This document shows, piece after piece, positions 1,247-30,400 of a DNA stretch of 64,000 nt. Both the position numbers and the translations under genes were made by a program. Below the pieces are notes generated by a model that was given only the letters and a program-made list of their open reading frames with translations, did not search any database and had not been told where the DNA came from. Numbering within the stretch: the first letter of the stretch is position 1; each line of letters begins with the position of its first letter. Source of the stretch: Diplonema japonicum (lineage: Eukaryota > Protista > Euglenozoa: Diplonemea); NCBI GenBank assembly GCA_964019335.1, contig OZ025746.1, positions 1-64,000 on the forward strand. Direction: 5' to 3'.

Positions 1247-1255
1247 TCGTTGGTT
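1247..1255 (-). other. Third SL copy truncated after nt 8-9 by the satellite
   Basis: Same upstream context as the 5004-5042 copy (AAAAAAACGATTCTA-AACCAACGA), followed directly by CCCGCAAA repeats. Confidence 0.8.
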
Positions 1256-1787
1256 TAGAATCGTTTTTTTAAAAAGGGGGACTTGAGAAAATAAATAAAA
1301 AGGGGGACTTGAGAATGTTTTTTTTTTTTTTTTTTTTCTTCAAAAGACACACAAGGCACGATAAATCTTAAGAGAAAATAAAAATATTCCAAAACAGACA
1401 ATCAAGTTCCAACCTGGGAGGAAGGCATGGGTTTCTCTTTTTCTTTATGGGAGGGAGAGGGGAAGAAGAAGAAGCAACTCCAAATGATAAAAATTCAAAA
1501 ATAAAAATCTCAAAAAAGGCTTAAAAGAAGAAGAGGCAAATTCAAAAACATACTAGGGAGGAATGAGTGGGGCAGGGGGTAAAATTTAGGAGGGGGAAAG
1601 AGGGAGAATCAAAAAAGGGGAAAGGGGCAGAGTGACCAATGTCCATGCGAAAAAGCATAGAGCGGGGGAAGAAGAAAATCAAAAACAGGAAAAACACATC
1701 ACCACAAAAGAAAAAAGAAAAAAAAAAAAAAAACGTCGACCGAGATGGTTCCACTTCAAAAAGAAAAAGAAAAAGAAAAACAGAAAA

Positions 1788-1821
<34 letters not shown>
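1247..1821. repeat. Long direct repeat U, left copy
   Basis: Near-identical to 5034-5606, differing mainly in homopolymer lengths and a few substitutions. Confidence 0.95.
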
Positions 1822-1824
<3 letters not shown>

Positions 1825-3395
1825 GTCGGGTCAGCACCAGCTTTCCCCACCATCACTTCCGACATGGCCCAGAGCGACATCAGCCCCCCTATCCAAACTG
1901 GAGTGCTTCCCACCAGAGTGCCCCCTACCGCTAGCCAAGCGAGCTCCCCGGCGGACCATTCATCCCCTCGGGGCCCCACCTGTACCCTTGACCTGCGGGT
2001 GGTCCTCCTGTCGCTCCCCGGCCTCTTCCACAACACTGCCGCATGCAGGAAGGAGGGGGCCATCCCGATGCCCGCCCCCAGCACCTGCCTCACCCCTGGG
2101 ATCAGCAAGAGGGAGAACAGGGCGACCCAGGCCCACGCCCCCAGGTGCTCCCATCTCACCCCTTCCTTGCTGTGTCCCGTCCGTCTGCGGTGCCTCCTTG
2201 TGCCGGCTGCAGCCCCAGGTGCCGGGATTCTGGGTGCCAGGGGTTGGGCTCCAGGCGTTCCCACCTCGGTCCGCTTCAGCCCCATTGCAGGGTCATCTGG
2301 CTTCTGTTCCAGGGCGGCCTCGTGTTCCTCTCTGCAGGCCCTCCTCCTCCCTTCTTTCCTCGCACGACGGTGCCTTTTCTTCTCCTGTCTGGCAGCCTCC
2401 CTCGCCCCCTCCCTCGCCTTGGTCCTCTTCTCCCGACGCCTCTGAAGGGCCGTTTCGCTCCTGTGCCTCCTCCTGTTCTTCTTCCTCTTGGGTGCTGGCT
2501 TAGGTTCCCTGCCACCCATGGCAATCCAGGGGGCTCTTTTCTGTCTTCTCACAAGGGTGTGCAGTGGTGCTCTCACGTCGCTCGCGGCCTCCGCCCCAAC
2601 CACACCTTGGCGGGCGGTGGGGGTGGGTGCTGGGTCCCCCTGGTTGTTTGAAAAGAAAAAAGGTTCCTCCTTGTTTGTTTTTTTTTTTTCTTTCCCTTCC
2701 ACCCTCAAAAAAAGCCCCCGGCCCTTGGGGACCAGGGTGTACACCTCCGTAGAGGGTCCAGAAAAAATGGGGGGCAGAGAGGGAGGGGCACTACCTTCTC
2801 TCGGGCGTGCTGTCTCTCCCTCTGCCTTTTTTTCCTCCGAAGAGGGTCTGTTTTTCACCTCCGTGGAGGGTCCCTCTGGAGAGGGCTCTATAAAAGAAAA
2901 AGGGGGGGACAAATGGGGGGGAGGAACACTACCCTCTCTCGGGAGTGCCACCTCTTCCCCTCTCTCTCTGTTTTCCTCCGAAGAGGGTCTGTTTTTTACC
3001 TCCGTGGAGGGTTCCTCTGGAGAGGGCTCTAAAAATGAAAAAGGGGGGGACAAATGGGGGGGAGGAGCACCACCCTCTCTCGGGAGTGCCACCTCTTCCC
3101 CTTTCTCTCTATTTTCCTCCGAAGAGGGTCTGTTTTCCTCCGAAGAGGGTTCTAAAAAAAAAAAGGGGGCGGGTGGGGCACTATCCTCTCTCGGGAGTGC
3201 CACCCCCCCTTGCCCACAAAAAAGGGGATCTAAAAAAGGGGGTTCGTCTGTTAACCCAGGGGATGGGTCTTCCTGGGGTGTGCGGGTGAGCTTGGGGCCT
3301 ACCGCACGCAGGGTGATCGACACCCTGACACCAGTGGACATCCCGGACGGGATGTGGTGTGTCCACTGGTGTCTCGCTTCACCTTCCAGCTCCTT
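1822..3395 (-). pseudogene. Second AlkB C-terminal remnant fused to 47-aa Pro/Glu repeats, a basic region and hydrophobic segments (core of ORF 1542..3752)
   Basis: LEGEARHQWTHHIPSGMSTGVRVSITLRAVG is a paralog of the first AlkB C-terminus, but the HxD half is replaced by unrelated sequence. The ORF runs into the poly-T of repeat U. Confidence 0.7.
2785..3205. repeat. ~141-bp coding tandem repeat (VALPREG...EPSTEVKNRPSSEEN), 3-4 units
   Basis: TCTCGGG(A/C)GTGC cores at ~2803, 2941, 3082 and 3193. Confidence 0.9.
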
Positions 3396-3616
3396 GGCTT
3401 TTTTTTTTCTTGGCGTCCGCCGTAAAATTGGTGATATTTTGATAAACAAGAGAGGTATGTATGGGGGAAAAAGTGCATGCTCAGTGTTGGGGGGGGTCCG
3501 GAATAGTGGTTTTATCCGCCTCTTTTCACCCATGGGACGGAAAAGCCCCCGCCTTGCCGATCGCGATGGAAGACACGGTTTATGGTTCCCATGCCCCCCA
3601 CCGGAATTAAAATAAA

Positions 3617-3768
3617 TTTTTTTAAAAAGGGGGACTTGCGAAAATAAATAAAAAGGGGGACTTGCGAAAATAAATAAAAAGGGGGACTTGCGAAAATAAA
3701 TAAAAAGGGGGACTTGAGAATGTTTTTTTTTTTTTTTTTCTTCAAAAGACACACAAGATAAACCTTAA
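3617..3768. repeat. Third, truncated copy of the U terminus containing four 26-bp tandem units (AAAAAGGGGGACTTGCGAAAATAAAT)
   Basis: ACTTG cores at 3634, 3660, 3686 and 3712 (26-bp period), followed by the U sequence GAGAATG(T)nCTTCAAAAGACACACAAG. The full U copies carry only two units. Confidence 0.9.
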
Positions 3769-3778
3769 CAAATGGGGA

Positions 3779-3816
3779 CAATAAAGTACAGAAACTGTAG
3801 CTTTAGAATCGTTGGT
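3779..3816 (-). other. Second genomic SL copy (38 of 39 nt), not followed by a GT donor
   Basis: Minus strand reads (A)8-CC-ACCAACGATTCTAAAGCTACAGTTTCTGTACTTTATTG-TCCCC. Confidence 0.93.
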
Positions 3817-3893
3817 GGTTTTTTTTCTTATCCTCCTCCTGGGAGGGAACAAAGGGGGGGAATCTACAATGGGGGGGTTTACAAGGGGGGAAT

Positions 3894-4586
3894 TTACAAG
3901 AGGGGGGACAGATAAACAAGAGAAAGAAGAACAAGAGCGGAGGAAGGGGGGGAAGGGGCGCCTCCCTCTCTCGGGGACACCTCCTTCGCACTCTCTTTCC
4001 TTCTCCCCACAAACACAGTTTTTTTTTTTTCTATTTCCTCCACAGAGGACACAGAGGGGGAGGGGAGGGGCACGGGGCAGCCAACCGTCCGCAGGGTGAT
4101 CGACACCCTGGAGCCCGAAGAACACCCTTCGGGGATGTGGTGGGTCCATTCGTAGCGGGCCTCACCCTCCAGAATGGCCCAGGTGAAGGGAGGCACCAGG
4201 TACTTCGATACCCTGGACCCCTTCTTCAGGACCATCGTGGTCTCTGCACCGTACGAGAGGATGAGGACCACTGGTCCCAACCTCACGTCGTCGGTGTGGT
4301 GGGCGATTCCACACCCAGGCTCGTATCGATTTACGAGCACCTGGTCTGGGGTGATCCCCAGCCCCGCTGCGGTGGCCACCTCCGCCACCCAACCCCTGGC
4401 CCCCTCTGGGATCGGGGTGGTGCGGCGCACTTTGGCACGGGCACCCACCCACCTGAAACCAAATTGGAGGGTTTCCCTCCCTTTGTTCCCCGAAATGGAC
4501 TCCCACCCCACCGAGAGCAAGGTCTCTGGGTGGGTGGGGGCTGGGCCTGTTCTTAAGCCCGGGGGGTGGTCCCCTCCCGTGAGCAC
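3894..4586 (-). CDS. AlkB-family 2OG-Fe(II) dioxygenase (ALKBH8/ALKBH7-like motif set); no in-frame ATG, so possibly frameshifted upstream or a retropseudogene
   Basis: Motifs PPGL...LQFG, VNRYEPGCGIAHHTD (NxY, HxD), GPVVLILSYG, LEGEARYEWTHHIP (distal His) and RVSITLR (Rx5R). Confidence 0.85.
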   Translation of the reverse strand: MLTGGDHPPGLRTGPAPTHPETLLSVGWESISGNKGRETLQFGFRWVGARAKVRRTTPIPEGARGWVAEVATAAGLGITPDQVLVNRYEPGCGIAHHTDDVRLGPVVLILSYGAETTMVLKKGSRVSKYLVPPFTWAILEGEARYEWTHHIPEGCSSGSRVSITLRTVGCPVPLPSPSVSSVEEIEKKKTVFVGRRKESAKEVSPREGGAPSPPSSALVLLSLVYLSPLL

Positions 4587-5003
4587 CCACCCTCCTTTTT
4601 TTCTTTTTTTCCCCCCTCTCAGTCTTCAGGCGGGTGGCGGTGGCGGCTGCGGAATCGGGAGCGGGCGCGCTGGCTGCGGGTGGTTCTATTTTTTTATGTT
4701 TTTTATTATTTTTGACGACATCTAGAGGGGATCTAAGGGAGGGGAGGGGTCATACTGCCCGGCCAGATTTCGGTCTGGTCGGGTGGTCGGCTTGGTCGGC
4801 GTCTCTCGTAGGCGTTCCTCCTGCGGGCGGCGGTCTCCGACGACGTTTCGTCTAGGGTCCATTTTTATTTTTTTTTTTTTTGTGTTGAGGGGGGAGGGGA
4901 TCCTTTGCTAAACGGCAGGCGGGCCGGGCCGAAACAACCCCCCCAGACGACGACGAACGGACACCGAGCGGACGCAGCAGGCACCAACAAAAACACAGAC
5001 GAC

Positions 5004-5042
5004 CAATAAAGTACAGAAACTGTAGCTTTAGAATCGTTGGTT
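5004..5042 (-). other. Complete 39-nt spliced-leader (mini-exon) sequence AACCAACGATTCTAAAGCTACAGTTTCTGTACTTTATTG
   Basis: Length 39 nt, AACNAACG 5' end and CAGTTTCTGTACT(T/A)TATTG 3' end match euglenozoan SL exons (cf. T. brucei AACTAACGCTATTATTAGAACAGTTTCTGTACTATATTG). It is followed by GTCGTC rather than the usual GTATG SL-RNA intron start. Confidence 0.93.
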
Positions 5043-5606
5043 TAGAATCGTTTTTTTAAAAAGGGGGACTTGAGAAAATAAATAAAAAGGGGGACTTGAG
5101 AATGTTTTTTTTTTTTTTTTCTTCAAAAGACACACAAGGCACGATAAACCTTAAGAGAAAATAAAAATATTCCAAAACAGACAATCAAGTTCCAACCTGG
5201 GAGGAAGGCATGGGTTTCTCTTTTTCTTTATGGGAGGGAGAGGGGAAGAAGAAGAAGCAACTCCAAATGATAAAAATTCAAAAATAAAAATCTCAAAAAA
5301 GGCTTAAAAGAAGAAGAGGCAAATTCAAAAACATACTAGGGAGGAATGAGTGGGGCAGGGGGTAAAATTTAGGAGGGGGAAAGAGGGAGAATCAAAAAAG
5401 GGGAAAGGGGCAGAGTGACCAATGTCCATGCGAAAAAGCATAGAGTGGGGGAAGAAGAAAATCAAAAACAGGAAAAACACATCACCACAAAAGAAAAAAG
5501 AAAAAAAAAAAAAAACGTCGACCGAGATGGTTCCACTTCAAAAAGAAAAAGAAAAACAGAAAAATAAAAAAAAAAAAAAGGAAAAACAAAAAGAAAAAAA
5601 AAAAAT
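5034..5606. repeat. Long direct repeat U, right copy
   Basis: Near-identical to 1247-1821. Confidence 0.95.
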
Positions 5607-5735
5607 CTAAGTGGCACCTGTTCCCTATTCTTTTATTTTTCCCTTTTTTTTTTTCTCAGAAAAAAAAAAAAAAAAAGTTTCACATCTTCCTATGGGGGGG
5701 GGGGGGGGGGACCAGCCCCCCACACCCCCGCTGGC

Positions 5736-6905
5736 TTATCTGGCCAGCGAGCCTTTGGACCTCTTCTTGTGGGGTATGGGCCCCACCCGTGCCCTCCCCG
5801 ACTCGAGCTGCAGCCAAGCCACCGCACTGTTCACCGGGGCCCAGTTCTCCTTGTTGCGCACCTTGACCGTGTCCCGCACCAGGTCGTCGCTCCCCAGCTC
5901 TTCCATCAACCTGTGCTCCGCCAAGAACTTGAACTGGGGCCCGGTCATCAACTCTTCGTCTCCATCACCCTTCCCAAGGAAGTCCTTCACCACCCCCGGA
6001 TCCTCGCTTGCACTCGTGGGGTGCGGCATCGTCACCACCGCCCCCACAGAGTACAGCGACTCACTCACCCGGAAGTCCATTGCGCGGAACACGGTCCCCT
6101 CGTACTTCGGCTGCGACACCATTGCTCGGTGCAGCGAATAGGCGAAGTCTTTCATCGGCTCGTAGCGCTGTCGCTCCCCGCGGAACGCCACCCCACGCAT
6201 CGCCGCATTCACGTCATAGCACAAGGGGCTCTCCAGCGTGTACAGCCGAAGGTACGGCTCCGACTTCCCCTCCACCTGCTGCACCGCCCACTCCGCAGTC
6301 ATCTTCTGGAACACCCCACCAGCCGCCCGCTGAGCCGCTTTTAGCTTCCCGCACTTCGCGAGGTGCCGCTCCTTGCCCCCCGCATTCAGCGCCGTCTCAC
6401 ACGCAGCGCACGTCACATACCCCTCGCACTCCGCCCCCATCGCAGCCTCCACCGTCGCCAGCATCGGCCTCGCGCACGACGCACCACCCTCGAAGAACTC
6501 GCTCCACCCTCGGTCCACGTCAATCTCGCCGAGCCCGTCGCTGTACCGGTTCACCCCTCCCTTACTTGCTGGCACCACCCCTCCAGCCACCTTGAACGCC
6601 TTCACCGCCTTCTGCAGCTCTTTCCGTCCCTCCGACACCAGCGATAACACGCAGTTCCCCACATCGCGCTCCTCGCTGCGCTTCAGGAGCTTCTGCATCA
6701 CAGCAATCACACTGTGGCACAATGCGTCGTGCCACCTCCCCAGCGCCACCTCCAGCTCCCTTCGTGTTGTTTCCACGGGCGTAGTGGTTGTGGTTTTCGC
6801 GCTGCCCTCCAACTGTCCACGCAGCTGCTCCACCGCTTCCCACGCTTTCTTAACAGCTCCCTCTCCTGCTGGAGGAGGCGACGTCAGAGACTTCGCAGCC
6901 AGCAC
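5736..6905 (-). CDS. C2HC zinc-finger plus NAD:arginine ADP-ribosyltransferase (ART, R-S-E class)-like protein; first ATG at 6698; C-terminal catalytic loop atypical
   Basis: CAAC-x11-H-x3-C finger; LRLYTLESPLCYDVNAAMR, GTVFRAM (catalytic R) and PTSASED (STS-like). A pyrimidine tract plus CACACAG acceptor lies at ~6941-6975. Confidence 0.72.
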   Translation of the reverse strand: MLAAKSLTSPPPAGEGAVKKAWEAVEQLRGQLEGSAKTTTTTPVETTRRELEVALGRWHDALCHSVIAVMQKLLKRSEERDVGNCVLSLVSEGRKELQKAVKAFKVAGGVVPASKGGVNRYSDGLGEIDVDRGWSEFFEGGASCARPMLATVEAAMGAECEGYVTCAACETALNAGGKERHLAKCGKLKAAQRAAGGVFQKMTAEWAVQQVEGKSEPYLRLYTLESPLCYDVNAAMRGVAFRGERQRYEPMKDFAYSLHRAMVSQPKYEGTVFRAMDFRVSESLYSVGAVVTMPHPTSASEDPGVVKDFLGKGDGDEELMTGPQFKFLAEHRLMEELGSDDLVRDTVKVRNKENWAPVNSAVAWLQLESGRARVGPIPHKKRSKGSLAR

Positions 6906-8065
6906 ACCAGATCCCGCAAAGCCTTTTGCAGGTTGGAATTCTGTGTGAATGTGCGTTTAAAAGAGAAAAAGAAAATTCAATCTTTTAACGTCAAGGTGAC
7001 AAGCCGAACAACGCTCCAAGGGGTGGGGGTGCTTGTAGTCAAACGACACATTGGTTAGGCCAAAGCACCGTTCGTGAGCCAAGTAGGAGAGGGAGGTAAG
7101 GGGTCGCGAGTAACAGCTCCGTTCCAATATCTTCCACTCCTGCAGCTTCTCATCCCGCTTCGCAAGAAAGAACCCCTCACCTTCTAAATCTTCTTCGTCT
7201 GTGTAATTGATCGTCTCCAACCCTGCATAAACCCGCAAGCCCGTTCGCCTCCCTTCCTCTGCTCATATTGGTATATGTAAACAGAACTGTTCTTTCCCCC
7301 CTACTCTTACGGCAAAAAATACAATAAGAAAAAGAGAAAGGAAGCGAGGGGGGAAGTAGAAGAAAAAAGAACAAAAAAATTAGAATAGGAACATGACTAA
7401 AGCACATTACCAGTAAGGGTGTGAGCTAAAGACGCACGGGCATCAGTCTCACAGCTGTCTACAGTTAAGCAATTTTTACAGATTTTTCCTGTTCAAAAAA
7501 AAGGGAGGAGGGGGGGAAAGGTGGGAGGAAGGTGTTGTTAAACACAAGGTGCAATGACCAGACTGCACCTTGTGTCCATCTGGAGAGAGATTCATATGTT
7601 AACGAGTTAATTCGTTCTAATCGAAAATAACATGTCTGAATACGTAATGAAATGAAAGTACAGGCTCTACAGGAAAAGGAGGGCGCGGGCGCCCATTACA
7701 CTTGTATTTCACCCTCCAGACAATGACATCCACATCGAAAAAAAATAGCTAATAGAGAAATAAAAGATAATAAAAGGGAGAATTTAAAGAAAACGAGAGA
7801 AAAAAAAAAGAAAAAACATAAGAAAAAAAAAGAAGAACAGAAAAGAAAGTATTAAGGGTCCGCTACAATAAGTGTCCGTTTAAAGACTTGTGAGACTTTA
7901 ACTTTCTTTTCCTTTTTCTTTTCTTCTTGATCCTCTGGGTTTTTTTTTTTTTTTTTTTTTTTTTCCCCTTTTTTTTTTTAAATTCCGCTAAAGACACAGG
8001 GAGAAAGAAAGAGAGAGAGAAAAAAAGAGGTTTTTAGACTAAACTACTACGACTCGGACATGGTC

Positions 8066-11000
8066 TTACAATGAAGGGATCAGGCTGCCGTACACCTTCT
8101 TCAGCTCAGAACGTAAGAAGCTCTCGATCTTCGCCTTGATAGCGCTGAAGGAAGGGTTCACGTTGAAACTGAAATTGATCTTCTGCTTCACGATCTCAAG
8201 GCTGGCACTGAAGCCCACCGCAGCAGATGAGCTTGACAACCCGGCTGTGAAAGACAAATAATTGATCTTGAGGACGTTGCTGAGTGCGCCACCCACAGCA
8301 CTGACAATGTCGCCGAAGGCGTCTGTCACCTTCGACACCGCATCCATCGTCTTCTGTGTAGCAGTGACGACACCCTTAGCAGTGTTAACGGCACCACGTG
8401 CCACATCGAGCGCCCCTTCAGTGGCTTTGATCAGAACTGTCAGGGCTCCTTCCGCAGTCGCCTTCGCTGCGGCAATGGCCGCGTACTCAGTCCAGCAAAC
8501 GGGGACTGCACCGCACGTCCAGAACTTCTTCTTGCATTTCTTCTCCTTGCTTTTGCAGCTGCTCTTCTTCCTGCTCAACGAACCCGACAGACTGCTCACC
8601 TTGTTCCTTGCGCCTTTCAGTTCACCAGTCACTTCGTCCTCCACATTCTGCAGCTCTTTGTTGGCGTTGTCCAAGTCCTTCTTTGCCGCGTCAAGGTCTT
8701 TCTTAGCAGCTGCGGTGGCCTTGTCTGCGGCGTCGCTGAGACTGTCAAGGAAAGCAGTGGCCTGTGCGATGATCGCGCTGATGAGGTCGCCCTCCATGGT
8801 TGCCGTGATCTGGTTGTGGAAGTTGGACTTGCCCGGAGTTCCCGTTGCCTCGATCTCCACCTGCACATTGAAGTTGCTGCCCAGGCTGAGCATGAAGTTC
8901 CCGTAGATCCCATCGTCGGCCATGTGCAGGTAGATGCTCACGTAGCTTCCGAGGATCCGCGCTCTGCCGTCAATTTCCAGGCTCTGCTTCTCCTTCGTCA
9001 GCTCCAAATCGAAGGAAGGACCAGCCCTCCCGTTGCTTGATGTGATCTGGATGGGGCCCCAGTTCATCTTGTCGAGGATCAAGGTTGCCTTGAGGCCAGT
9101 CGCCTTCACGCTGAACTGGGCGTAGGACACCTTGATGACGTTCCACAAGTTCAGGTCCACAATCTCCAAGTTGATACCGGCAGGGACGGTGGACGAGACC
9201 CCGGCCACAGTGACATCCACCGCGTTCACGGGGTCAGGGTTGAAGCTCCCATCGAAGCTCTTGATGGATGCAGTGGTCAGGGTGTTCCCCACCTTGCCGA
9301 GGCATGTGTTGCAGTTCGCGATGGAGGTCACGATCTTGTTGAGGTTGAAGTTGTTCACCTGTGCCCGGAAGGCTGTTTTCGTGAAGTCCTTCACATCCAC
9401 GCTGATGGTGATCTTCCCCGAGGTCCCAGCCACCTCTAGACCGCCGATGAGCTGGAAGCTGCTCGGGAGCAGGGCGGGGGAGATGGTCATCCCGATCGCA
9501 AGGGGGAACAGCACCTTCACATTGGAGATCCCGAACGGGTTCACCCAAGGCGTCGCGCTGTTCAGAGAAATCTCAACACCGAGCCCGCCAGCAGACAGAG
9601 AGATGAAGCCAATCGCCGTGAAGTCCTGAGCGTTGCTGCCGCTTCCCAGTGTGAAGTCGAGCTCGACGTTGAACCCCATCTCGGGGCCCCCAGTTGTGAT
9701 GCTGAAGGCGAGGGCGATAGTGCGCAGGGTCGCCTGGCCCCCGAGGGGGATGTTCCCAGCAAGCTGCACGAAGATGTTGAGCTCGGTGGTGGAGACGATG
9801 TCAGCAAACAACAGGAGCCCGCCAGAGGCGCCCGCAGCCTGGATCTGGCTCTTCATGTCACTGGGGGCCACACTAAGCACGTCTCCGATGACACCGCCGT
9901 CCAAGGGGAGGGACGCAGCAATGGAGAGACCTTTCCTCAGGGTGACATCCCCGACAGTCATCTTGTTCTTCGCCACGGAAAGCCTGATGTAGTCAGGACC
10001 CATGGAGGAGAGCACCGTCTTGATCGGACCGGGAAGCCCGTCGGCGTTCGCAAAGTTCTCTGCCGTGAAGGCCATCCCGTAGAGCCACGTCCCCTGCTTC
10101 TTGAATGAGACGAGGATAGAGAAATCGATCCCGAACACCTGTCCGTCGGCAGTGAGAGAGATGCTCTTCTCCGAGAAGGAAACCTCCAGTGCCACGTTGT
10201 TCAGGTTCAAGTTCTTCATGGAGCTGAGCATCCCACCAGCGTTCCCGATAGAGGAGGAAAACTGGCTGCCCCCAGAAAACTCGCTCGAGAAGCTGTCCGG
10301 GGACACGCTGCTGCCACTCTTCAATGCGCCCCTCAGCGTCACGTCGATGGGCCCACCGACCGTGAAGTCCAGGCTCAGGATGAAGCTCGACAGATAATTC
10401 CCGTTTACAGAGACTGTCTTCTTGCCGTCCTCTCCCTGAACAACACTCACGGTGACAGTGGGGAGGTTGATGACCTTCGAGTGGAAAGGGATGGCGAGCC
10501 CGTCAAAGGTCCCTGTGATGGCCCACGCTTTGCTCGGAGACCCGCAGGACTTGGAAAACGCAACCTGGGTCTCAATGGCAGGGATGTTGTCCAGATTCCT
10601 GAGAATGAGAGTCCCGGTCCCGGTGCAATCCGAGCTCACAGCAACGCTGATCTTCACGTTCGTGTCCTCGAAGGTGATGGTCCCTGTCACAGAAGAGGCA
10701 CTGCTCGAGCTGTCGAAGTCAAGGGAGAATTCCAAACCGGCAGAGGTCTGAGCCGTGACAGTCCCGGTCCAGGAGCGTCCAGCGAGGGGAGAAGAAGCGT
10801 CGCCCCCATTGCTGCTCGATGTAAGCGCGATGCTCACGCCCGACAGAGAGGTCGCACCGGGCCCGTTCCAGGCATCGATGGCGCCGTTGATGGTCATCAC
10901 ACCGGAGCAGCTCTCGTACGTCATGCCACCTGTGAAGACCAGGTCGTTCGCCCCGTCCAGCCTCAACGTCGCCTCCCTGATGGTACCGGTCACAGGCTCG

Positions 11001-13096
11001 CAACCCGACTTGTAGGTGAAGGCCACTGTACTACTGAAGATGAGATTGTCAGTGGAGAAGGAGGTCACCACGTCGACGGACTCGAAAGCGCCATCTGCGA
11101 ACACAACCTTTGCAGAGGAGCTGGCGCCGAACAGGTTGGCGGTGGCCTGGAGGGTTCCGCTCCAGGTGAGCGCCCGGGTGGCCGCGTTTGCGATTTTCGC
11201 GTGCAGCACGAACCCGACGGACGACAAAGTGAGCCCGTCCATGGTGAGGTCACCGTCGAGGGTGCCCTCGAATGTGAACCTCTCTTCATCCAAGGCGGCC
11301 GCACACTCGTCGAAAGACATCGCGGCGTCGAACACCTGCCCGGTGGTGAGCGTGAGCGTTCCGGACCCCGCGATCGGAGCGCAGCCTTGCTCCCTGTCCG
11401 GGGTGATCTCGATCGAGCCCTCGAAGGTGGCCCCGTTCCCGTTCACCGTCAGGTCTCCCACTAGGGAGGTGAGTGCGTTGTCCTCGAGTGTGGTGGTCAC
11501 AGTGATCTCTGTGTCGTCTATGGCTGCCGTCCCACTGATGCTACCTGACCACTTCACAGGCCCCCCCGCTACAGCTCCCTGCAAATCGATATGCACGTTC
11601 GTCAGCTCCACTCCGAACACAGTCCACGATGCAAGATCCCCTGTGATGGACCACAGCGGCAGGTGCGCGTTGTCCGCGTTGTAGTTGAAGACGTGCGACA
11701 CAGTGGCCGTGAATTCGGGAATTGCAGCGTTGCTGGGGGCAGCTGTGATGGCAGCGGTACCTGTCGCCACACCGTCAGCGACAGCAAGGTCCACACTCCC
11801 GGTCACGATGTCGTTCTCGATCGAACCAGCCACGCTGAAGGCAGTCACTCCGGTAGTACTGTCGAAAGAGACACTTGCGCTGACCGTCCCCTCCCCAACG
11901 GTGACAGTCCCCGAGGCATCGCCAGTCCAGACGGTGCCGGAAGACCCCTCCGAGGAGGTCAGGTGCACAAGCATGCTAGACACAGCAACCTGGGACACGG
12001 TGGCGCTGTCCACGCTGGCTGTCACGTCCCACAACGGGGTCGTGGTCCCAGAGACACAACCCAGCTGAGCGATCGCGCATGCTGCTGTGAAGTCGGCGTC
12101 AGGAATGGAGAGCGTCGCAGACCCGCTGTTCTCCGTGCTGCAGCTGTCGACGAAGGTCAAGGAGCCCTGCATGGAGAGCCCTCCGTAGGTCGCGTCAAAG
12201 TCTACCGAAACCGAGAGCAGCTCCGACCCGTCGAACTCTCCTGCAACAGTGGCCTCGCTTCCGAACATCTCTATCGTCGCCGACAACGAGCCCGCGAAGG
12301 TCACCCCCTCAGAATCGCGGCCGATAGATACTTCCGTCTCCAGCGAAGGGAGCTTCAAGCCGCGCAGGTCGTACTCCGTGTTGAGGGCAGCTCCCAGAAC
12401 AAGGACGGGCTTAGTGGACGATGAGTCCATGAGGGCGCAGGGGTCGAAAGACACACCTGTCACCTCAAGTCCAGCGTCCACGCCCGGCACGGAGAGCTCT
12501 GGAAGGCCGACGAGCGGGGTCAGAGGGCACGATGATGACACGAGGCTTCCATCGAAGAAGGGAGCGCCGGGGAGGTCGAGGCTTACCCTGGAAGGGAGGG
12601 CCAGCTCCATCTCCGTGTCCTCGATGTCGATGTGCATCAGGGTCTTCACTGCCGTCTCGCTCTGCAGCAACTCGAAGCTCGCTTCAAGGATTCCTATAGT
12701 GGCAATGGTACCTTCGATGCTTCCGTCCCATGTCAGGGCGCCGCTGTCCATGCGGATGGTGAGGCTCGCCGCAGCCGTCAGATCGATGAGGTTCGTGTTC
12801 AGAAGGTTGGCGTACCCGTGGAACTCAACCGCTAATACCTGCGTCTCGCACGTCAGCACTGATGCACTGCTCAGCATGGTGGCGAAGGCCGTCCCCGAGT
12901 ACTTCACTGTCCCCGGCAGGCTGTGCGTCCCGCTACTCACGGTATAGTTGCTCTCCGTGTTGCAGCTGCTCAGAACAGTCTCCAGTTCTGAGTCCAGCGC
13001 TACGCAGAGTTCGAGGTTTCCGTTAGTCCCACAGACGTCCATGCCTGCAGCTGCAACAGCCAGGCTGCAAAGCAGCACTGCCATTTTTGTGTTCAT
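8066..13096 (-). CDS. 1676-aa secreted, beta-strand-rich protein with C-terminal Cys-knotted coiled-coil hairpin; function unknown
   Basis: Uninterrupted 5-kb GC-rich ORF; N-terminal signal peptide MNTKMAVLLCSLAVAAAG; ~1450 aa of alternating G/S/T/V/L/F strands; Ala/Lys heptads around CKSKEKKCKKKFWTCGAVPVCW. Confidence 0.92.
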   Translation of the reverse strand: MNTKMAVLLCSLAVAAAGMDVCGTNGNLELCVALDSELETVLSSCNTESNYTVSSGTHSLPGTVKYSGTAFATMLSSASVLTCETQVLAVEFHGYANLLNTNLIDLTAAASLTIRMDSGALTWDGSIEGTIATIGILEASFELLQSETAVKTLMHIDIEDTEMELALPSRVSLDLPGAPFFDGSLVSSSCPLTPLVGLPELSVPGVDAGLEVTGVSFDPCALMDSSSTKPVLVLGAALNTEYDLRGLKLPSLETEVSIGRDSEGVTFAGSLSATIEMFGSEATVAGEFDGSELLSVSVDFDATYGGLSMQGSLTFVDSCSTENSGSATLSIPDADFTAACAIAQLGCVSGTTTPLWDVTASVDSATVSQVAVSSMLVHLTSSEGSSGTVWTGDASGTVTVGEGTVSASVSFDSTTGVTAFSVAGSIENDIVTGSVDLAVADGVATGTAAITAAPSNAAIPEFTATVSHVFNYNADNAHLPLWSITGDLASWTVFGVELTNVHIDLQGAVAGGPVKWSGSISGTAAIDDTEITVTTTLEDNALTSLVGDLTVNGNGATFEGSIEITPDREQGCAPIAGSGTLTLTTGQVFDAAMSFDECAAALDEERFTFEGTLDGDLTMDGLTLSSVGFVLHAKIANAATRALTWSGTLQATANLFGASSSAKVVFADGAFESVDVVTSFSTDNLIFSSTVAFTYKSGCEPVTGTIREATLRLDGANDLVFTGGMTYESCSGVMTINGAIDAWNGPGATSLSGVSIALTSSSNGGDASSPLAGRSWTGTVTAQTSAGLEFSLDFDSSSSASSVTGTITFEDTNVKISVAVSSDCTGTGTLILRNLDNIPAIETQVAFSKSCGSPSKAWAITGTFDGLAIPFHSKVINLPTVTVSVVQGEDGKKTVSVNGNYLSSFILSLDFTVGGPIDVTLRGALKSGSSVSPDSFSSEFSGGSQFSSSIGNAGGMLSSMKNLNLNNVALEVSFSEKSISLTADGQVFGIDFSILVSFKKQGTWLYGMAFTAENFANADGLPGPIKTVLSSMGPDYIRLSVAKNKMTVGDVTLRKGLSIAASLPLDGGVIGDVLSVAPSDMKSQIQAAGASGGLLLFADIVSTTELNIFVQLAGNIPLGGQATLRTIALAFSITTGGPEMGFNVELDFTLGSGSNAQDFTAIGFISLSAGGLGVEISLNSATPWVNPFGISNVKVLFPLAIGMTISPALLPSSFQLIGGLEVAGTSGKITISVDVKDFTKTAFRAQVNNFNLNKIVTSIANCNTCLGKVGNTLTTASIKSFDGSFNPDPVNAVDVTVAGVSSTVPAGINLEIVDLNLWNVIKVSYAQFSVKATGLKATLILDKMNWGPIQITSSNGRAGPSFDLELTKEKQSLEIDGRARILGSYVSIYLHMADDGIYGNFMLSLGSNFNVQVEIEATGTPGKSNFHNQITATMEGDLISAIIAQATAFLDSLSDAADKATAAAKKDLDAAKKDLDNANKELQNVEDEVTGELKGARNKVSSLSGSLSRKKSSCKSKEKKCKKKFWTCGAVPVCWTEYAAIAAAKATAEGALTVLIKATEGALDVARGAVNTAKGVVTATQKTMDAVSKVTDAFGDIVSAVGGALSNVLKINYLSFTAGLSSSSAAVGFSASLEIVKQKINFSFNVNPSFSAIKAKIESFLRSELKKVYGSLIPSL

Positions 13097-13248: not shown

Positions 13249-14346
13249 CCCGTTGCAGAAAAAGAGAATAAAAAAATAGAAACAAGTAGACGAGGGTGGT
13301 GTGTGGGGGGAAGGGAACAGTATGAACAAGGATAGCAGCAATGATGCCTGTGCGACGAGGGTGGGTGACAGGCAAGCAGAAACTGCACCTTTTTACTTTT
13401 TTTTTTAAAGCCCTCTTTGCCGAGATTCGCTTCCTTCATATTTAGCGACATAACAATCAAAAATCAAAAAACAAAAAGAAGGGGAATTCACTCTGATGGG
13501 GGGGGGGGGGGGGGGGGGGGGGGGGTGCTTGCAACGACCCACCAAAGAAAAAAAGAAAAGAAGATAAGAAGGTCCAGCTTCTATTATTTCATCATCTTTT
13601 CGTTTCTTCTACTTTTTTCTCTTTTTTTTAATTTGTTTTGTAGATCAAAAAAAAAGAGATAAAATGAAGAAAGGGGTGGATCAGGAGGAAACACACTTAG
13701 GGAAAAAAAGGGGGGAGAAAAGGAAATCTGTCTTTTTCTTTTTTTTGGGGGGGGGGAGACCATGGCACCTTTGCAAAAAGGGCCCGATAGAAGAGAAGAA
13801 AAAAAAAAAAAAGAGAAATTCGGTATTTTAACGTCAAGATGACACATCGACACATTGGAGTGAGCCTCTAACCTGTGTGGCGCCACCTCTCAGGCTGGTT
13901 ACACACCTAGACCCGGCCAAAGGTCTTGCTGCCCCTTGGAGAATAAAAAAAATAAAATAAAAAAGACAAAACACCACCCACCTTCAAGATCAAGCACATA
14001 CCCACTTACCCCCATCACACCTCCTGTAGGGTGGAGGCACGTGACGCGTAGAAGGCTTGGGGGCTTTTTGTTTTTTTTATTTTATTTCTTCTAAAAAAAA
14101 AAAAAATAAGGGGGGGAAAGGGTAATCGAAGGTGCGGTGTGGAAATGTTCCCCCCCTTTTTTTTCTGTATTTATTTTTCTACTTTTTTCCCTTAAATACA
14201 GGGGAGGAAAGAAATAATGGCCTCTCATTTCAAGCGAAGAAAGAGAAGGCGAGGAGGGGAAGAGGGGGGGTGCCCGTTTTTCCCCCAGTCTTGTATCCAT
14301 CTATTTTAGAAACTTTCTTTAGACTGGGCGGGGGAAGGGGAGGGGG

Positions 14347-14387
14347 GCAAAAGGAAAAGGAAAAGGAAAAGGAAAAGGAAAAGGAAA
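14347..14387 (+). repeat. (GGAAAA)n microsatellite
   Basis: About six tandem units visible. Confidence 0.85.
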
Positions 14388-15595
14388 GAAGAAGAAAAAG
14401 AGAAAAAAAACATTGATCACGGCAAAGGCCTTTAAGAAGAAAAAAAAAAAGAAAGGGCCTTCAGAAATTCAAAAAAAAAAGGATAAAGTCGGTTATAATT
14501 GTTGTTTGTGTCCACAGCCGGGGGTTAACCTGTAGTTTATTACCATTCTTTTCTTTTTTTTTTTTTTTTTTTTTTTTTTTTGAGAAAAGTTTTGTGTGTG
14601 TGTATGTGTGTACAGCTGAGGAGGCTTCAGAGAACCTGCTTTTTAGAAGGCATTTCACTTTGCACACTGCTAAAAAAAACAGCATCGGTATTTAGAAGGG
14701 AAAAAAAAAGATTATTTTTTAAAAGAAGAGGAACTTGGAAGAAAAGAAAAAAATCTCGGATTCGAGACAAGAGAAAAAAAAAAAGAAACTTGAAAGAAAA
14801 AGAAAAAAGAAAAAAAAAGAAAAACAACAACGTTTCATTTATCCGTCTTTTTTTCCCTTTCTTTTTTTTTCCCCCCTTTTTTTTTTCTCCTTTTTTTTTG
14901 AGTAGAAACACAAAGACAAGGGTACGAAATTCTTATTTTTTTTTTCTTTTCACTTGATGTGATGAAAAAAAAAAAGTGAAAAAAAAAAGAAATAAAACAA
15001 GGCACCCTGGACAGGTACCCTCCTTGCCTTTTTTTTTTTTTAAAAAATTTTAAAAAAAAAATCTTTTTTTTCTTCTTTTCAAATCCAGTTAGCCTGGCGA
15101 TATTACCAGGCACAAAGGGAGGGGGAGGGAGAAACATAGATATATATATATTATATAAAAAAAAGAATCACTATGATAGGAAACGAACGGCCCACCAATA
15201 AAAAAAAAAAAGAAAGTCCCCACCCGGGGCTTCAGTACTGATCGCCATAGGATCACCTTGCTTGGTTTTTTTTTTCTTCTTTTTTCTTCTTTTTTAAGAA
15301 CGTTCTTGGCTCATCTCTTTCTCACGCATATTTTCATTTCTTTCTTCTTCTTTTTTTTTTTTTTTTTTTCCCTTGTTTCTTTCTTTCTTTCTCAGGGAAA
15401 AGAGGTTGCAGATGGCTGAGCGCTCTGTATCCCGAAAGGAGAAAGAAAAAAAAAAAAAAAAGAACGAAAACACACTTCTTATTTATTTTTTATTCTCTCT
15501 TTTTTTTTTTTTGTTGTTTGCAACCGAAAGGAACCAAAAGGAATAAGGGAGCACATGGATTAGGGATTTATGTAACATAACATAAGGTGTCAAGA

Positions 15596-15631
<36 letters not shown>

Positions 15632-16476
15632 CTCTTTTAAATCAGCTGCTGACAATTGGGACATTATCTCAGATAACGAGACTTGAAAGAACGTGGGACA
15701 GTGTACTCAAAATATATATTGCATCCTTAGTTTAAAAAAAAAAAAAAAAAGCAAAACACTAGGAATGCGCGACTCGGAAGGATTCACCTCTTTAGGGGGG
15801 GGGGGTGGGGGTGGGGACCTTTCATTCTCTGATAAAGATACCCTTTCTGATCGCAAAGAGCTTGTGGCATTCTCTTGTTCTTAAAATTATTATTTTTTTT
15901 TTTTATATACCGAACCCAATTCACTAGATATCCATCTGCAACTATTACAAAAAATAAAAAGGAAAAGAAAAAGGATGAAGAAAGGAGGCCTTCCTCATTT
16001 GATTCAAAAGGCTTCCTCCGTTTTATTTCATTTTTTTTTTTAAATTCTTCTTCCTATTTTGTGTTTCTCCTTTATTCAGGGCGGCTCCGTAGTACAGCCT
16101 GCCAAGACTTTTTTTCTTTTTTTTTTTTTCGTTCTTTCATTGCATCATCAAAAAAAATATGGAAAAAAAAAGGCCTTTTTTTTTTTTACGAACAAAAAAA
16201 GAAGCAGCGGAGAGGAGAGAGGGAAAATTGAAATTCGAATTCAATAAGGGGGGGGGGGGGGAGAAAACCCCACACACGGTAAGTTAAGTTACCGTATAAA
16301 AAGATTTTCCGTTCCCCCCTCCTCTCTGCGCTCCTTGGGGAAGGGGGATATATATATATTTTTTTTTCTTTTTACACCAACAAAAAAAAACAACAAATAT
16401 AATTTTTTGTTTACAAAAAAAAAAGGGGGGGAGGGAAAAAAAAAGAAAAAAGAAAAACCAGATTTTAATCTATTTA

Positions 16477-27449: not shown

Positions 27450-30400
27450 TTTTCTTTCTTTTCCTTCTTTTTTTATTTCCCCCGGGGGTGCAGGGAAGGG
27501 TGGGGGGGGGGGGGGGGGTCTGTTTTTAAAAAAAATTGTGTTTCTGTAAAAAGACGAAAAAAACAAAAATGAGGGGGGGGGTGGGAGGGAAAAAAGAAAA
27601 GAGAGGAAGAGGGGGGAAAATAAAATAAAAAACAAAAAAAAAGAGGACGGAGGGGGTATGGAAAAGATGGGGAAAAAAAAGAAATAAAACAACTAAAGGG
27701 AAAATAGAAAAGAAAAAGGGAAACCAAATAAAGGGGAACACCCTTAGAGACTAAGGGGAGGTAGGGGGAGGGATCGGACCAACCATAAAAAACCCATCAA
27801 AGGGCGATATTACATAAAGATTAAAGGCAGGGGAAGAAAATGGGGGGAAAAAAAAATTGCACGTAGAAACAAGGGGAAGGAGGATATCGTGGAGGAAGAA
27901 GGTATTTTTTTCTTTTTTTTTTTTTTTCTTTTGTTCTTTTTCATTTTATGAAAAATGTCCCCTTGATTCGTATTGATCTACTAGCTGTGCACAATGTATG
28001 GGTTTGGGGAGGAGGGGAGGGGAGGAAAGAAGAAAAAAAAAAAAAAAAAAAAAGTAATTTGGGGTTTTTTTTTTTTTTTAACGCGTATAGTTTCTACACA
28101 TGAAAAGGGATAAGAGTGGTGCCAAATCTTTATTGGCAAGCATTCATTACTTTGCAAATACGGGAGAAATCTTGGGGGACTAGGGGGAATGGGAAGAGCA
28201 CGTAAAAAGAAATTTGTGTTTTTTTTTTTCTCTTTTTTTTCTTGTGGCGCTTAGGCCCGCTCTGCGAGTGTCGTATCCCACCGTTGTTGCTATTTTTTTT
28301 TTTTTTTTTCGATCCATTCCTTTGTTCCTAAAAAAAATTATTTTCTTCCGTTATTAGGGAGGGAGGGGGGTTCCCTTGAGGAACTCGAGACAACTTCACA
28401 AAAAAAAGGAATCAAATATTAATTTGGAAAAAAAAAAAAAATTAAAAAAAAAACACGAGGGAAAAAAAAAAAAAAGATATCACCACTTTTAGAGACACAA
28501 TCCTCCTTGAGAGCCTGCAAAAGTAAGTGAAAATAGAAGGACGGGCGAAGAAGAAGGGAAAAGAAAAAAGAAGAAAAAGACATAGAAACTACCCGCCCAT
28601 TGGTAACGGCAATCGTTGAAGATCCCACTTTGGGCTAAGTTTTTTCTTTTTTTTTCCTCTTTTTTTTTTTTTCAATGTCGGGGAAGGTGAAATGTTTTTT
28701 GCTATTTTCTTTTTCTTCTTTTTTTTTAAAAAAAAAAAAAAAAACTTTGGCATGCAAGACGAGGGGTGTTGAGGGGGGGGAAGGGAGGGGAAGGGAATAA
28801 AAAAAATTCACTATTGATGAAGGGAGAGAGGAAATATTTCTTTTTTTTTTAAAAAAAATCTCTTTTTTTCTTTTTTTTCCCCCCCTCTTTAGCCCATGCA
28901 CATAAAAGGGGGAAAAAGAAGAAGAAAAAAAGAAAAAAAAGAAAAAAAAGGGGGGGAGGGGGAAAGAAGGGCCAAAGGGGATTGCGGGGGGTGGAAAATA
29001 AGGGATAAGGAATAGAAATACATTAAGAGAAATGCAAAAAAAAAAAAAAGGGGGAGGGACAAGCAAAAAAAAAAAAATCTCTCTGTATATCTTCTGTTCT
29101 TTTTTTTTTTCCTCCCCAAAAGACAAAGAAGCAAATCTTTAAAGAAAGGGGGTGGGGGGTAGGAAGGGCATGGGGAAATTGCTATTGAGGAAAGAAGAGA
29201 GGAAAGGGAAGCATCAAAAAAAAAAGAAAGAAAGAAAAAACCAGGACCAAAACCCACCACAGTTCTGACCTTTGATTTTTTTTCCCCCCTCCGTTTTTTG
29301 AGTTGCACCTCTATGTTTTCATCCTCCACCCAAAGCAGTACCTTTTAAAAAAAAAGGGAGGGAGACAGTGCCATTGAAAAAAAAAAAAAGAAAGAAGATA
29401 CAATAAAGAATAGTCACGATCGGACCCACCACAGCCCTGCACGATTTCTCCTTTTTTATGTTCTTCTTCTTTTTTTTTCTTTTTTTGCTTTTTTTTTGAG
29501 TTTCAGTCTTTCCCTCTCTTTTCTTTCTTGCCCCCCTTGGTTTTTCCTTTCGTTCTCACTTCTTTATTTTTTTTTTTCTGTTTTTCGTTTTTTTTTTTTT
29601 AAATTACATTTGATAAATACCGAAGCAAAGGGGACACCCTCCCTATTGCTTTTTTTCCCCCTTAAGTTCCTCCCCACTTTCCCCTCTTTTTTTTTTCTTC
29701 GTTTTTTTTTTTTTTTTTTTTTTTTTTTCTTCTTCATTTTTTTTTCTTCGTTCGGCGAACCAATGACCCTTCTTCTTCTCGCACAGGTGCAGAAATAGGG
29801 GGAAAAAGAGATGGGGGGGGAGGGGAGGGAGGGGGGGAATCATCATTCTTTTCTGATCCCTCTTTTGCCGAAAAAGGAAGAAAAAAAAAAAACTTGTATT
29901 GTTGTCATGTGCATGGAAGAAAGAAGAAAAAAAAAAGAAAAAAAAAGAGGGGAAAAGAAAAGCTGGCATGACGGATCTAACCCACAACAGCCCTAAAACC
30001 CCATAGAAAAAAAAAAATACAAGAGTAACTGAAGGACGAGGCTATTTCTTGCTCTAGACCGATTTTCTTACCTTTTTTTTTTTTCGATACTAGAAAGCTT
30101 AGAAAATAAACAGTAAAATACCCACCAGATTCAGCGGGGCAATAAAAAAAAAAAAAAAAAAAAAAAAAAACAGAAGAAGCCACACTAAAATGACCATTCT
30201 CGCCATCGCCGTTTAAGGCTTTGGGGCGTAGGGGAATAAAAAAAAAAAAAAAAAGTACAAAAAGTGAGCTAACGGCTGACCTCTAAATGCAGGGAAATAA
30301 AAAGAAAAAAAAAGAAAAAAATCACGCATACACAAGAAAAGCCCCCCTCAACCCCTCCCAAGATGCCAAAGCAGTAAATTGTTGATTTTTTTGTTTCCCC

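Follow-up and report, generated by a model that had tools for sequence, protein, structure and literature searches.

Spliced-leader-headed retrotransposons with AlkB and OTU domains, and a probable decayed array of them at a chromosome end of Diplonema japonicum

The retrotransposons SLACS, CZAR and CRE split the gene for the spliced leader (SL) RNA, always between nt 11 and 12, and are flanked by the halves of that gene; TRAS1 and SART1, LINEs of Bombyx mori specific to telomeric repeats, have an APE-type endonuclease and two open reading frames (ORFs) (as cited in PMC7367193); and plant flexiviruses carry an AlkB domain in their polyprotein. The closest known kind to the elements treated here is that of MoTeR1 and MoTeR2 of Magnaporthe oryzae and the FoTeRs of Fusarium, telomere-targeted SLACS/CRE-like retrotransposons of the non-LTR type (without long terminal repeats) that have a restriction-like endonuclease (PMC7367193, PMC12857005). 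Truncation and capping, D-loop formation or break-induced replication (BIR) from proximal copies, and deletions have been documented in the MoTeR arrays of Magnaporthe (PMC7367193). Where a dinoflagellate retrogene begins with a genomic SL, this marks it as a retroposed, trans-spliced RNA (PMC6050394, PMC5585692), and Ty3/Gypsy elements of orchids have captured an AlkB domain (PMC9289625). Here we analyze the first 64,000 nt of contig OZ025746.1 (C99) of the euglenozoan Diplonema japonicum, a stretch (C99:1-64000, the window) that begins at the contig start, in an assembly of 62.5 Mb and 132 contigs. Its first 5949 nt are likely to be a chromosome end that bears a decayed head-to-tail array, derived by telomere-directed retrotransposition from two related element families, famA and famB, in the order famA-famB-famA.

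The famA and famB elements

The two families, famA (~9.2 kb) and famB (~10.7 kb), are in our judgement probably autonomous non-LTR retrotransposons, related to each other and residing at chromosome tips. The layout of famA, seen for example at the left ends of C31 and C93, is SL, leader, AlkB', 141-bp repeats, OTU, reverse transcriptase (RT), nuclease motif, a T-rich 3' untranslated region (UTR) of ~560 nt called U, 26-bp repeats and poly(A), and in the C31 copy an uninterrupted 2826-aa frame runs from the AlkB' region to a stop right before U. A 6,021-bp tandem unit at the opposite end of C99 has U as its 3' UTR and a 1795-aa frame that contains OTU and RVT_1; U was considered as an independent short interspersed element and rejected, since it is always the famA 3' UTR. 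On C24, famB forms a 10,659-bp tandem unit that begins with SL and the leader found in the window, and its 2990-aa ORF includes AlkB (aa 128-258), OTU (846-931) and RVT_1 (1350-1560). The Pfam match to RVT_1 (1.3e-16 in famA, 1.1e-18 in famB) is accompanied by phmmer matches of the RT region to R2 protein structures, and the nearest named relatives of the RT are D. papillatum proteins auto-named 'SLACS 132 kDa', at 39-40% identity. Between famA and famB the C-terminus keeps invariant C..C..H..C, RHDRV, PADV, D-V..VHP and K..KY motifs, and the combination of CCHC with RHD/PAD/D-V is the pattern of the restriction-like endonucleases of R2/CRE-type elements, which makes this region a candidate nuclease. 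Pfam detected no APE domain in either ORF, and no LTR-like terminal repeats of the elements were seen. Bodies truncated at the 5' end are common after poly(A) tails, and the A tails, variable in length, begin at a single fixed site.

The AlkB match is found both in the window, where the ORF at 3894-4586 hits the Pfam family 2OG-FeII_Oxy_2 (PF13532) at 1.5e-11, and in the famB ORF (1.2e-9), and the characteristic HxD...H and RxxxxxR motifs are intact in the translation (HHTD, WTHH, RVSITLR). An exhaustive protein search with this domain returned mostly small AlkB proteins, at no more than 42% identity, together with D. papillatum proteins that contain AlkB, OTU and RT in the same order and are 35% identical over 1263 aa. 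Since AlkB is in frame with OTU and RT in famA, in famB and in D. papillatum, it is an old integral domain of the element lineage; the first-pass annotation of this stretch had considered it as possible cargo, whereas it forms the N-terminus of the 2800-3000-aa ORF that the elements themselves encode and is, by its motifs, a putative dioxygenase. Fragments of the AlkB-OTU-RT ORF are present among the D. papillatum gene models under the name 'tRNA (carboxymethyluridine(34)-5-O)-methyltransferase' (KAJ9446222.1, KAJ9439924.1), and other members of the same 90% cluster bear the name 'SLACS 132 kDa protein'. The D. papillatum genome paper merely lists 'SLACS reverse transcriptases' among ~2500 models resembling transposable elements, and our literature search found no description of AlkB, or of AlkB together with OTU, in a non-LTR element. 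The presence of both domains may point to a need for demethylation of the element's own RNA, or for ubiquitin handling, in retrotransposition.

The condition that the first-pass annotation set for its own refutation, U and AlkB as single-copy sequences with no longer relative, does not hold, as U and the SL-leader-AlkB unit are both multicopy and the longer copies encode an RT and a nuclease-like domain. U is present in at least 40 copies of 95-100% identity, and their placement follows their strand: of the 19 copies on the minus strand, 17 are no more than 10 kb away from a contig start, and all plus-strand copies on contigs of known length lie within 21 kb of the contig end. The SL-leader-AlkB unit, which is the famB 5' end, has at least 17 near-full copies (93-100% identity) placed and oriented as U, and a sister family 73% identical to it has at least 19 more, again with the same placement and orientation. 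The exceptions to the end location are two copies of U, at C74:2239 (+) and C81:401047 (-), and a famB 5' copy at C30:335112.

The sequence that these elements adjoin is an 8-bp repeat, arrays of which occupy nearly every contig end inspected, on the plus strand at contig starts and on the minus strand at contig ends. A genome search with a 40-mer of the repeat gave 5,287 matches, no TTAGGG arrays are present in the assembly, and our literature search found no paper on this 8-mer; a telomerase-type gene with the RNA-binding domain (RBD) is present. At every terminus examined, the poly(A) end of the element is the one nearest the chromosome end. The antisense strand of the element is continuous with the G-rich strand of the repeat, and one phase is favoured where poly(A) and repeat join. 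Such joining fits sequence-specific target-primed reverse transcription in a genome that retains telomerase, by analogy with TRAS1 and SART1. Terminal-repeat tracts flank insertions on both sides at three ends (locus L002 on C71, C62 and C107). Element bodies truncated at the 3' end, as well as an SL cut at nt 8-9, run directly into CCCGCAAA repeats with an overlap of 1-2 nt. Repeats abutting truncated bodies and SL in this manner look like de novo addition to the C-rich strand. Homogeneous blocks of variant repeats occur as well, CCCCGCAAA at locus L025 and CCCGCGCAAA at L018. On C115 (~67,500-67,600, L041), a tract of terminal repeat beside a U copy leads into a run of N, well inside a 190-kb record, where scaffolding seems to have united two chromosome ends, or an end and a contig.

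Full-length copies of the elements begin with an SL of 38/39 nt, (A)ACCAACGATTCTAAAG...TTATTG, and their poly(A) always begins after CCCCCTTTTT, regardless of the number of 26-bp repeats, with a tail of 7-8 or 22-63 A. These SL heads and poly(A) joints sustain the earlier proposal that the pieces were reverse-transcribed from RNAs with an SL cap and a poly(A) tail. The sequence behind the poly(A) is the terminal repeat (usually from CCCGC, CCGC or CGC), a filler of 13-70 nt and then the repeat, a 5'-truncated body, or another SL. In two public runs, SL bins are 100-3000 times deeper than their flanks and SL is joined to many different sequences, in keeping with a genuine trans-spliced leader. 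The genome contains about 215 SL copies at dispersed sites, and they head several repeat families. The 33 distinct SL junctions show the core starting at ACCAACG in 28 cases, with A, C, T or G as the preceding base, as expected where an RT runs into the cap; 20 of the 33 continue with GT. SL is joined at no fewer than six different positions of the famA leader, and among the variant junctions only one has a canonical AG in the parent leader. Rfam searches, with gathering thresholds on the window and in E-value mode on ten SL-bearing loci, gave nothing useful, and the true SL RNA gene was not identified by them. An SL RNA gene at 5004-5042 of the window was considered and rejected, because what lies downstream is an element leader and ORF common to at least 17 copies.

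One of the 33 junctions, the internal locus L061 (C20:398340-399510), contains a tandem of relict SLs, in the order three terminal-repeat units, SL nt 5-20, TCCC, full SL, truncated SL (TTTCTGTACTTTATTG) and famA leader. Re-splicing of an older genomic SL at its internal CAG would be expected to yield just such a full SL with TTTCTGTACTTTATTG behind it, and the tandem implies repeated rounds of trans-splicing and retroposition. Further SL-headed families were recognized among 20 internal SL sites on C2-C21 (L047-L066), one reading SL+GT(A/G)TC(C/G)GACCGTGCCAATAAAG... and another SL+(G)GTGG..ATAACATGGAAATATAAG, the latter with varying junction positions; these repeats are often preceded immediately by a T-run and followed, 150-200 nt further on, by poly(A). 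We found no paper on SL-headed retrocopies in Euglenozoa.

Comparison with described elements

The likeness to MoTeRs extends over several levels: an RT of the SLACS/CRE kind combined with a C-terminal nuclease motif, copies located in or beside terminal repeats, head-to-tail arrays of a single orientation in which the sense strand is continuous with the C-rich strand of the repeat, truncated copies re-capped by new repeats, and arrays remodelled by BIR and deletion. There are also differences. The 3' poly(A) end of famA and famB faces the chromosome end, where MoTeR presents its 5' end; the Diplonema elements have real poly(A) and a 5' SL, MoTeR has telomere-like repeats at the 5' end; most neighbouring famA/famB copies have no repeat tract between them; and the ORF of 2800-3000 aa with AlkB and OTU, as well as the euglenozoan protist host, are peculiar to the elements described here.

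With SLACS, CZAR and CRE1-2, the Diplonema families share euglenozoan hosts, the architecture of RT plus restriction-like nuclease (predicted, in Diplonema, from motifs), and a physical association with SL; the best named database relatives of their RT are annotated as SLACS. The relation to SL itself differs, as famA and famB are headed by a whole SL, their 3' flank is terminal repeat, filler, another element or a new SL, and no SL-gene context surrounds them. Insertion inside an SL gene was looked for and not found, and these are therefore not SL-gene-specific elements of the CRE/SLACS type; the SL targeting suggested by the first-pass annotation gives way to an arrangement with a complete SL at the element's 5' end and a poly(A) that abuts the terminal repeat. 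Like famA and famB, TRAS1 and SART1 have a poly(A) that passes straight into the telomeric repeat, in fixed phase and orientation, and they differ by their APE domain and their two ORFs. The relict SLs of dinoflagellate retrogenes have their counterpart in copies that begin exactly with SL, close with poly(A) and vary in the position of the SL joint, and in the tandem at L061; in Diplonema, however, a euglenozoan, the SL-headed copies are mainly retrotransposons themselves, and tandems are rare. Finally, the orchid Ty3/Gypsy elements and flexiviruses likewise contain an AlkB-type Fe(II)/2-oxoglutarate dioxygenase with HxD...H and RxxxxxR inside their own polyprotein, although those are LTR elements and RNA viruses, whereas famA and famB are non-LTR and combine AlkB with OTU.

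Taken together, an N-terminal half of AlkB and OTU, SL heads, 3' ends turned to the chromosome end and a G-rich strand with its 5' end at the terminus are unlike all described elements that we found. The comparison extends telomere-targeted retrotransposons of the restriction-nuclease type from fungi to Euglenozoa, and the SL heads mark a copy as made through RNA in an organism that trans-splices, a marker used so far mainly in dinoflagellates.

The chromosome end of the window

Within the window, the pieces follow each other on the minus strand, from 5949 to 1247, in the order that had been read from the sequence initially, as U-A7-SL-leader-AlkB-A8-SL-short U-A7-AlkB remnant/repeats-U-A7-SL stub-(CCCGCAAA)n, an order that both the window sequence and the alignments uphold. 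From the interior to the tip, the features are:

5950-6917, minus strand: member of a host multigene family, truncated at the 3' end; the last chromosome-specific DNA, cut at 5950.
5051-5949, minus strand: famA 3' end, 5'-truncated, comprising the last ~65 codons, U and A7 (5057-5051); 93-98% identical to famA nt 8283-9237.
3819-5050, minus strand: famB 5' 1.2 kb, comprising CGATTCTAA (5050-5042), SL (5041 to 5004), leader, ATG at 4862 and AlkB ORF (4586 to 3894); 98.7% identical to nt 14-1240 of the C24 unit.
3617-3818, minus strand: mini retrocopy, comprising CC, SL nt 2-39 (3816 to 3779), a 155-nt variant U 3' end (3778 to 3624) with three 26-bp repeats, and A7 (3623-3617).
3381-3616, minus strand: famB 3' UTR fragment of 216-225 nt (3605 to 3381) behind an 11-nt filler, TTTATTTTAAT; 100% identical to nt 10233-10448 of the C24 unit.
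1822-3388, minus strand: famA body, 5'-truncated, nt 896-2321, comprising the AlkB' C-terminal remnant, 141-bp repeats and the start of the basic/transmembrane part of the ORF; 96-98% identical to and collinear with the C31 and C93 copies.
1264-1821, minus strand: distal U, the famA 3' UTR (C31 copy, nt 8680-9237), containing a single 26-bp repeat, and A7 at 1264-1270; 98.8% identical to full-length famA.
1247-1263, minus strand: SL stub CGATTCTAAACCAACGA, made of CGATTCTAA (SL nt 7-15) and ACCAACGA (SL nt 2-9), cut within SL and overlapping by 1 nt with the terminal repeat behind it.
1-1247, no strand assigned: terminal 8-bp array, (GGGTTTGC)n on the plus strand; 156.5 copies at 99% match by TRF.

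Alignment to the full-length references shows all of the window pieces to be sense-oriented and collinear with a famA-famB-famA order, and the 19-nt SL core occurs twice in the window, against an expectation of 0 by chance. The array starts at 5949, where it abuts the truncated host gene, and not at 5606 as first proposed. Paralogues of this gene, 84-92% identical, occupy internal sites on C96, C66, C49 and C93, their homology ends at ~5952-5972, and no Pfam match was obtained for the piece at 5950-6917. The C-terminal peptide of the adjoining famA piece is common to the 1795-aa famA ORF; a 389-aa ORF at 5736-6905 (-) is an in-frame chimera of the host family member with the last ~65 residues of the famA polyprotein.

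The famB 5' piece stops in A8 (3826-3819), an A-run that in full-length famB is internal, and relative to an intact copy its frame is broken by two 1-nt indels and a 4-nt deletion. In the alignment to the full-length reference, the famB 3' UTR piece spans famB nt 10233-10457. The 216-bp unit that it contains (window 3390-3605) sits in the 3' UTR region of famB on C24 and terminates in an A10 run; it has at least 30 copies in both orientations, about 20 of them at 100% identity, and most of those on contigs of known length are near contig ends. The AlkB remnant at 3297-3389 is 73% identical to 4080-4172, and the direct fusion of famA nt 896-2321 to U means that the 6.4-kb OTU-RT-nuclease part has been deleted.

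The junctions between these pieces are of two sorts. The deletion junction between 1822 and 1821 and the sequence joining SL to the short U each occur once in the genome, and the 29-nt junction A7-CGATTCTAA-ACCAACGA is found genome-wide at 1247-1275 and 5034-5062 only, both in the window; this duplicate is a local duplication and no family terminus. In contrast, the adjacency of U, A7/8, SL and famB recurs at four other ends, on C93 and C33 by sequence and on C69 and C79 as judged by adjoining coordinates, in each case without the 9-nt duplication, and this junction was therefore inherited and not formed at the C99 end. A parallel to the outermost junction exists on C40, where U-A7-CCAACG is followed by the terminal repeat. 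The claim that all three U copies have a common terminus stands in that each ends in CCCCCTTTTT and A7, but A7 is no fixed feature, given the tails of other lengths elsewhere; similarly, of the two SL pieces thought to be re-copied ahead of SL, CGATTCTAA is one, and 'AACC' belongs to the 38/39-nt SL itself.

As the internal junctions are unique to the C99 end, the composite constitutes no mobile family, contrary to what had been suggested, but rather the private history of one chromosome end. The composite itself is thus ordinary decay, and the elements that compose it are of more interest. Independent Logan contigs of other public runs cover the pieces of the window.

Origin of the array and competing explanations

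Proceeding from the structure, copy number, location and orientation of the elements and from the sequence and uniqueness of the junctions, we infer a priming mechanism, an order of events and trans-splicing as the source of SL. The poly(A) tail of the element RNA would pair either with a 3' end of the G-rich strand (...GGGTTT) or with a T-run that faces an internal A-run or the poly(A) of an earlier copy, and reverse transcription would be primed there. Priming of poly(A) at such an end would leave the poly(A) of every copy pointing to the chromosome end, with SL retained by full-length cDNAs, and priming on a T-run opposite poly(A) would yield head-to-tail arrays without repeats between the copies, as well as the mini retrocopy in the A-run of famB. 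The C99 chromosome would have been truncated within the host gene and have borne a famA-famB-famA array. Most of famB would then have been lost, and a 184-nt SL-headed retrocopy of the U tail placed at the break, in the internal A-run. Two more deletions would have removed the famB tail with the famA head and, subsequently, the famA OTU-RT-nuclease region. The distal U, once eroded, may have invaded the proximal U and copied a few dozen bases, U-A7-CGATTCTAA-ACCAACGA, after which it would have been capped with terminal repeats inside SL.

Several observations weigh against this account of telomere-directed retrotransposition. In the window and at all contig ends inspected (C1, C3, C4, C5 and L005-L025), it is the 5' end of the G-rich strand of the terminal repeat (GGGTTTGC) that lies at the tip, opposite to canonical telomeres. 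The 3' ends of famA and famB face the chromosome end, a polarity opposite not only to that of MoTeR but also to that of HeT-A and the Giardia elements. Because most neighbouring copies, those in the window included, are joined from poly(A) to 5' end with no intervening repeat, insertion into the repeat is directly seen at only some junctions. The nuclease domain is predicted from its motifs, a profile search of the PDB gave no match and the AlphaFold2 model has a pLDDT of 45. The genomic SL ends in TG, not AG, and some 40 leader copies yielded no SL-less master copy; each famA leader copy that was checked, roughly half of the total, is SL-headed. This makes the regain of exactly one SL per generation a difficulty. 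None of the short Logan contigs listed bridges the window-specific junctions, and junction sequences by themselves do not distinguish between deletion, template switching and recombination.

An alternative to the stepwise decay of an array is that the mosaic was laid down at once, as one or a few long chimeric cDNAs, the first of the two origins offered by the first-pass annotation, by an RT that, within a single target-primed reaction at the chromosome end, jumped from famA RNA to the famB 3' UTR, a U-tail RNA, the famB 5' end, an SL piece and the famA poly(A). All six pieces are sense-oriented, and their junctions have fillers or overlaps of 1-5 nt (CC, TTTATTTTAAT, GGAG/GGAAGG). Partial SLs precede full SLs in the window and at L061, several having SL nt 5-7 as their first base, the point at which an RT would be halted by a modified cap, and fillers between poly(A) and repeat vary at other chromosome ends. 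On the other hand, the famB fragment ends at an internal A-run and not at an RNA 3' end, and the A7 tails are identical and look templated: at L012 and L017, U-A7 is followed by bits of repeat and then A50+, which suggests that the short A7 was templated from read-through transcripts instead of being a fresh tail. The repetition of A7-CGATTCTAA-ACCAACGA requires a duplication at the DNA level in any case, and the adjacency of U, A7/8, SL and famB, being inherited, predates the C99 end. We consider such a single origin improbable; template jumping is possible for some of the junctions, without being needed to explain them.

A further alternative, which we hold quite unlikely, is an assembly artefact, in which a contig end rich in repeats was pieced together from long reads that were chimeric or resembled cDNA. 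The region consists entirely of repeats, no independent contig listed bridges the unique junctions, and errors in the consensus could account for the homopolymer indels of the AlkB fragment. Nevertheless, the same kinds of junction (poly(A) to repeat, poly(A) to SL, repeat to SL) are present at dozens of contig ends with differing details, the pieces are found in runs of at least three studies and also under a second organism label, and the array is joined to a host gene with internal paralogues. Least credible is the second origin offered by the first-pass annotation, a non-autonomous composite, mobile as a whole and directed to SL sequences, in which AlkB would be cargo, since, for all that U and the SL-AlkB unit are both multicopy and the best named RT relatives are annotated as SLACS, an SL-gene-targeting element, the internal junctions are single-copy, AlkB is in frame with OTU and RT in intact copies of two families and in D. 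papillatum, the whole SL stands at the 5' end with none on the 3' side and no split SL gene, and the AlkB copy of the window is frame-broken.

The preferred reading, retrotransposition directed to the chromosome end followed by decay, might be carried considerably further, although we regard the extension as tentative and more doubtful than not. Diplonemid chromosome ends could be continuously rebuilt by SLACS-like retrotransposons that use trans-spliced RNAs, leave SL relics with each copying round, bring their own RNA demethylase (AlkB) and deubiquitinase (OTU), and prime on a repeat whose 3'-ending strand is uniquely C-rich. If this were the case, the repeat-capped SL stub at 1247 would directly record the addition of repeats to the C-rich strand. 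The junctions thus bear on the odd polarity of the terminal repeat, which, if real, would be a far bigger finding.

Just interior of the retroelement array lies a 1676-aa ORF (8066-13096, minus strand) with a signal-like N-terminus and Ser/Thr/Gly-rich repeats, after which an A11-GGGG-A25 tract is found at 7940-7979. The window also includes two low-GC islands, at 14001-16000 (GC 0.35) and 28001-30000 (GC 0.36), the rest of it having a GC of 0.51-0.60.

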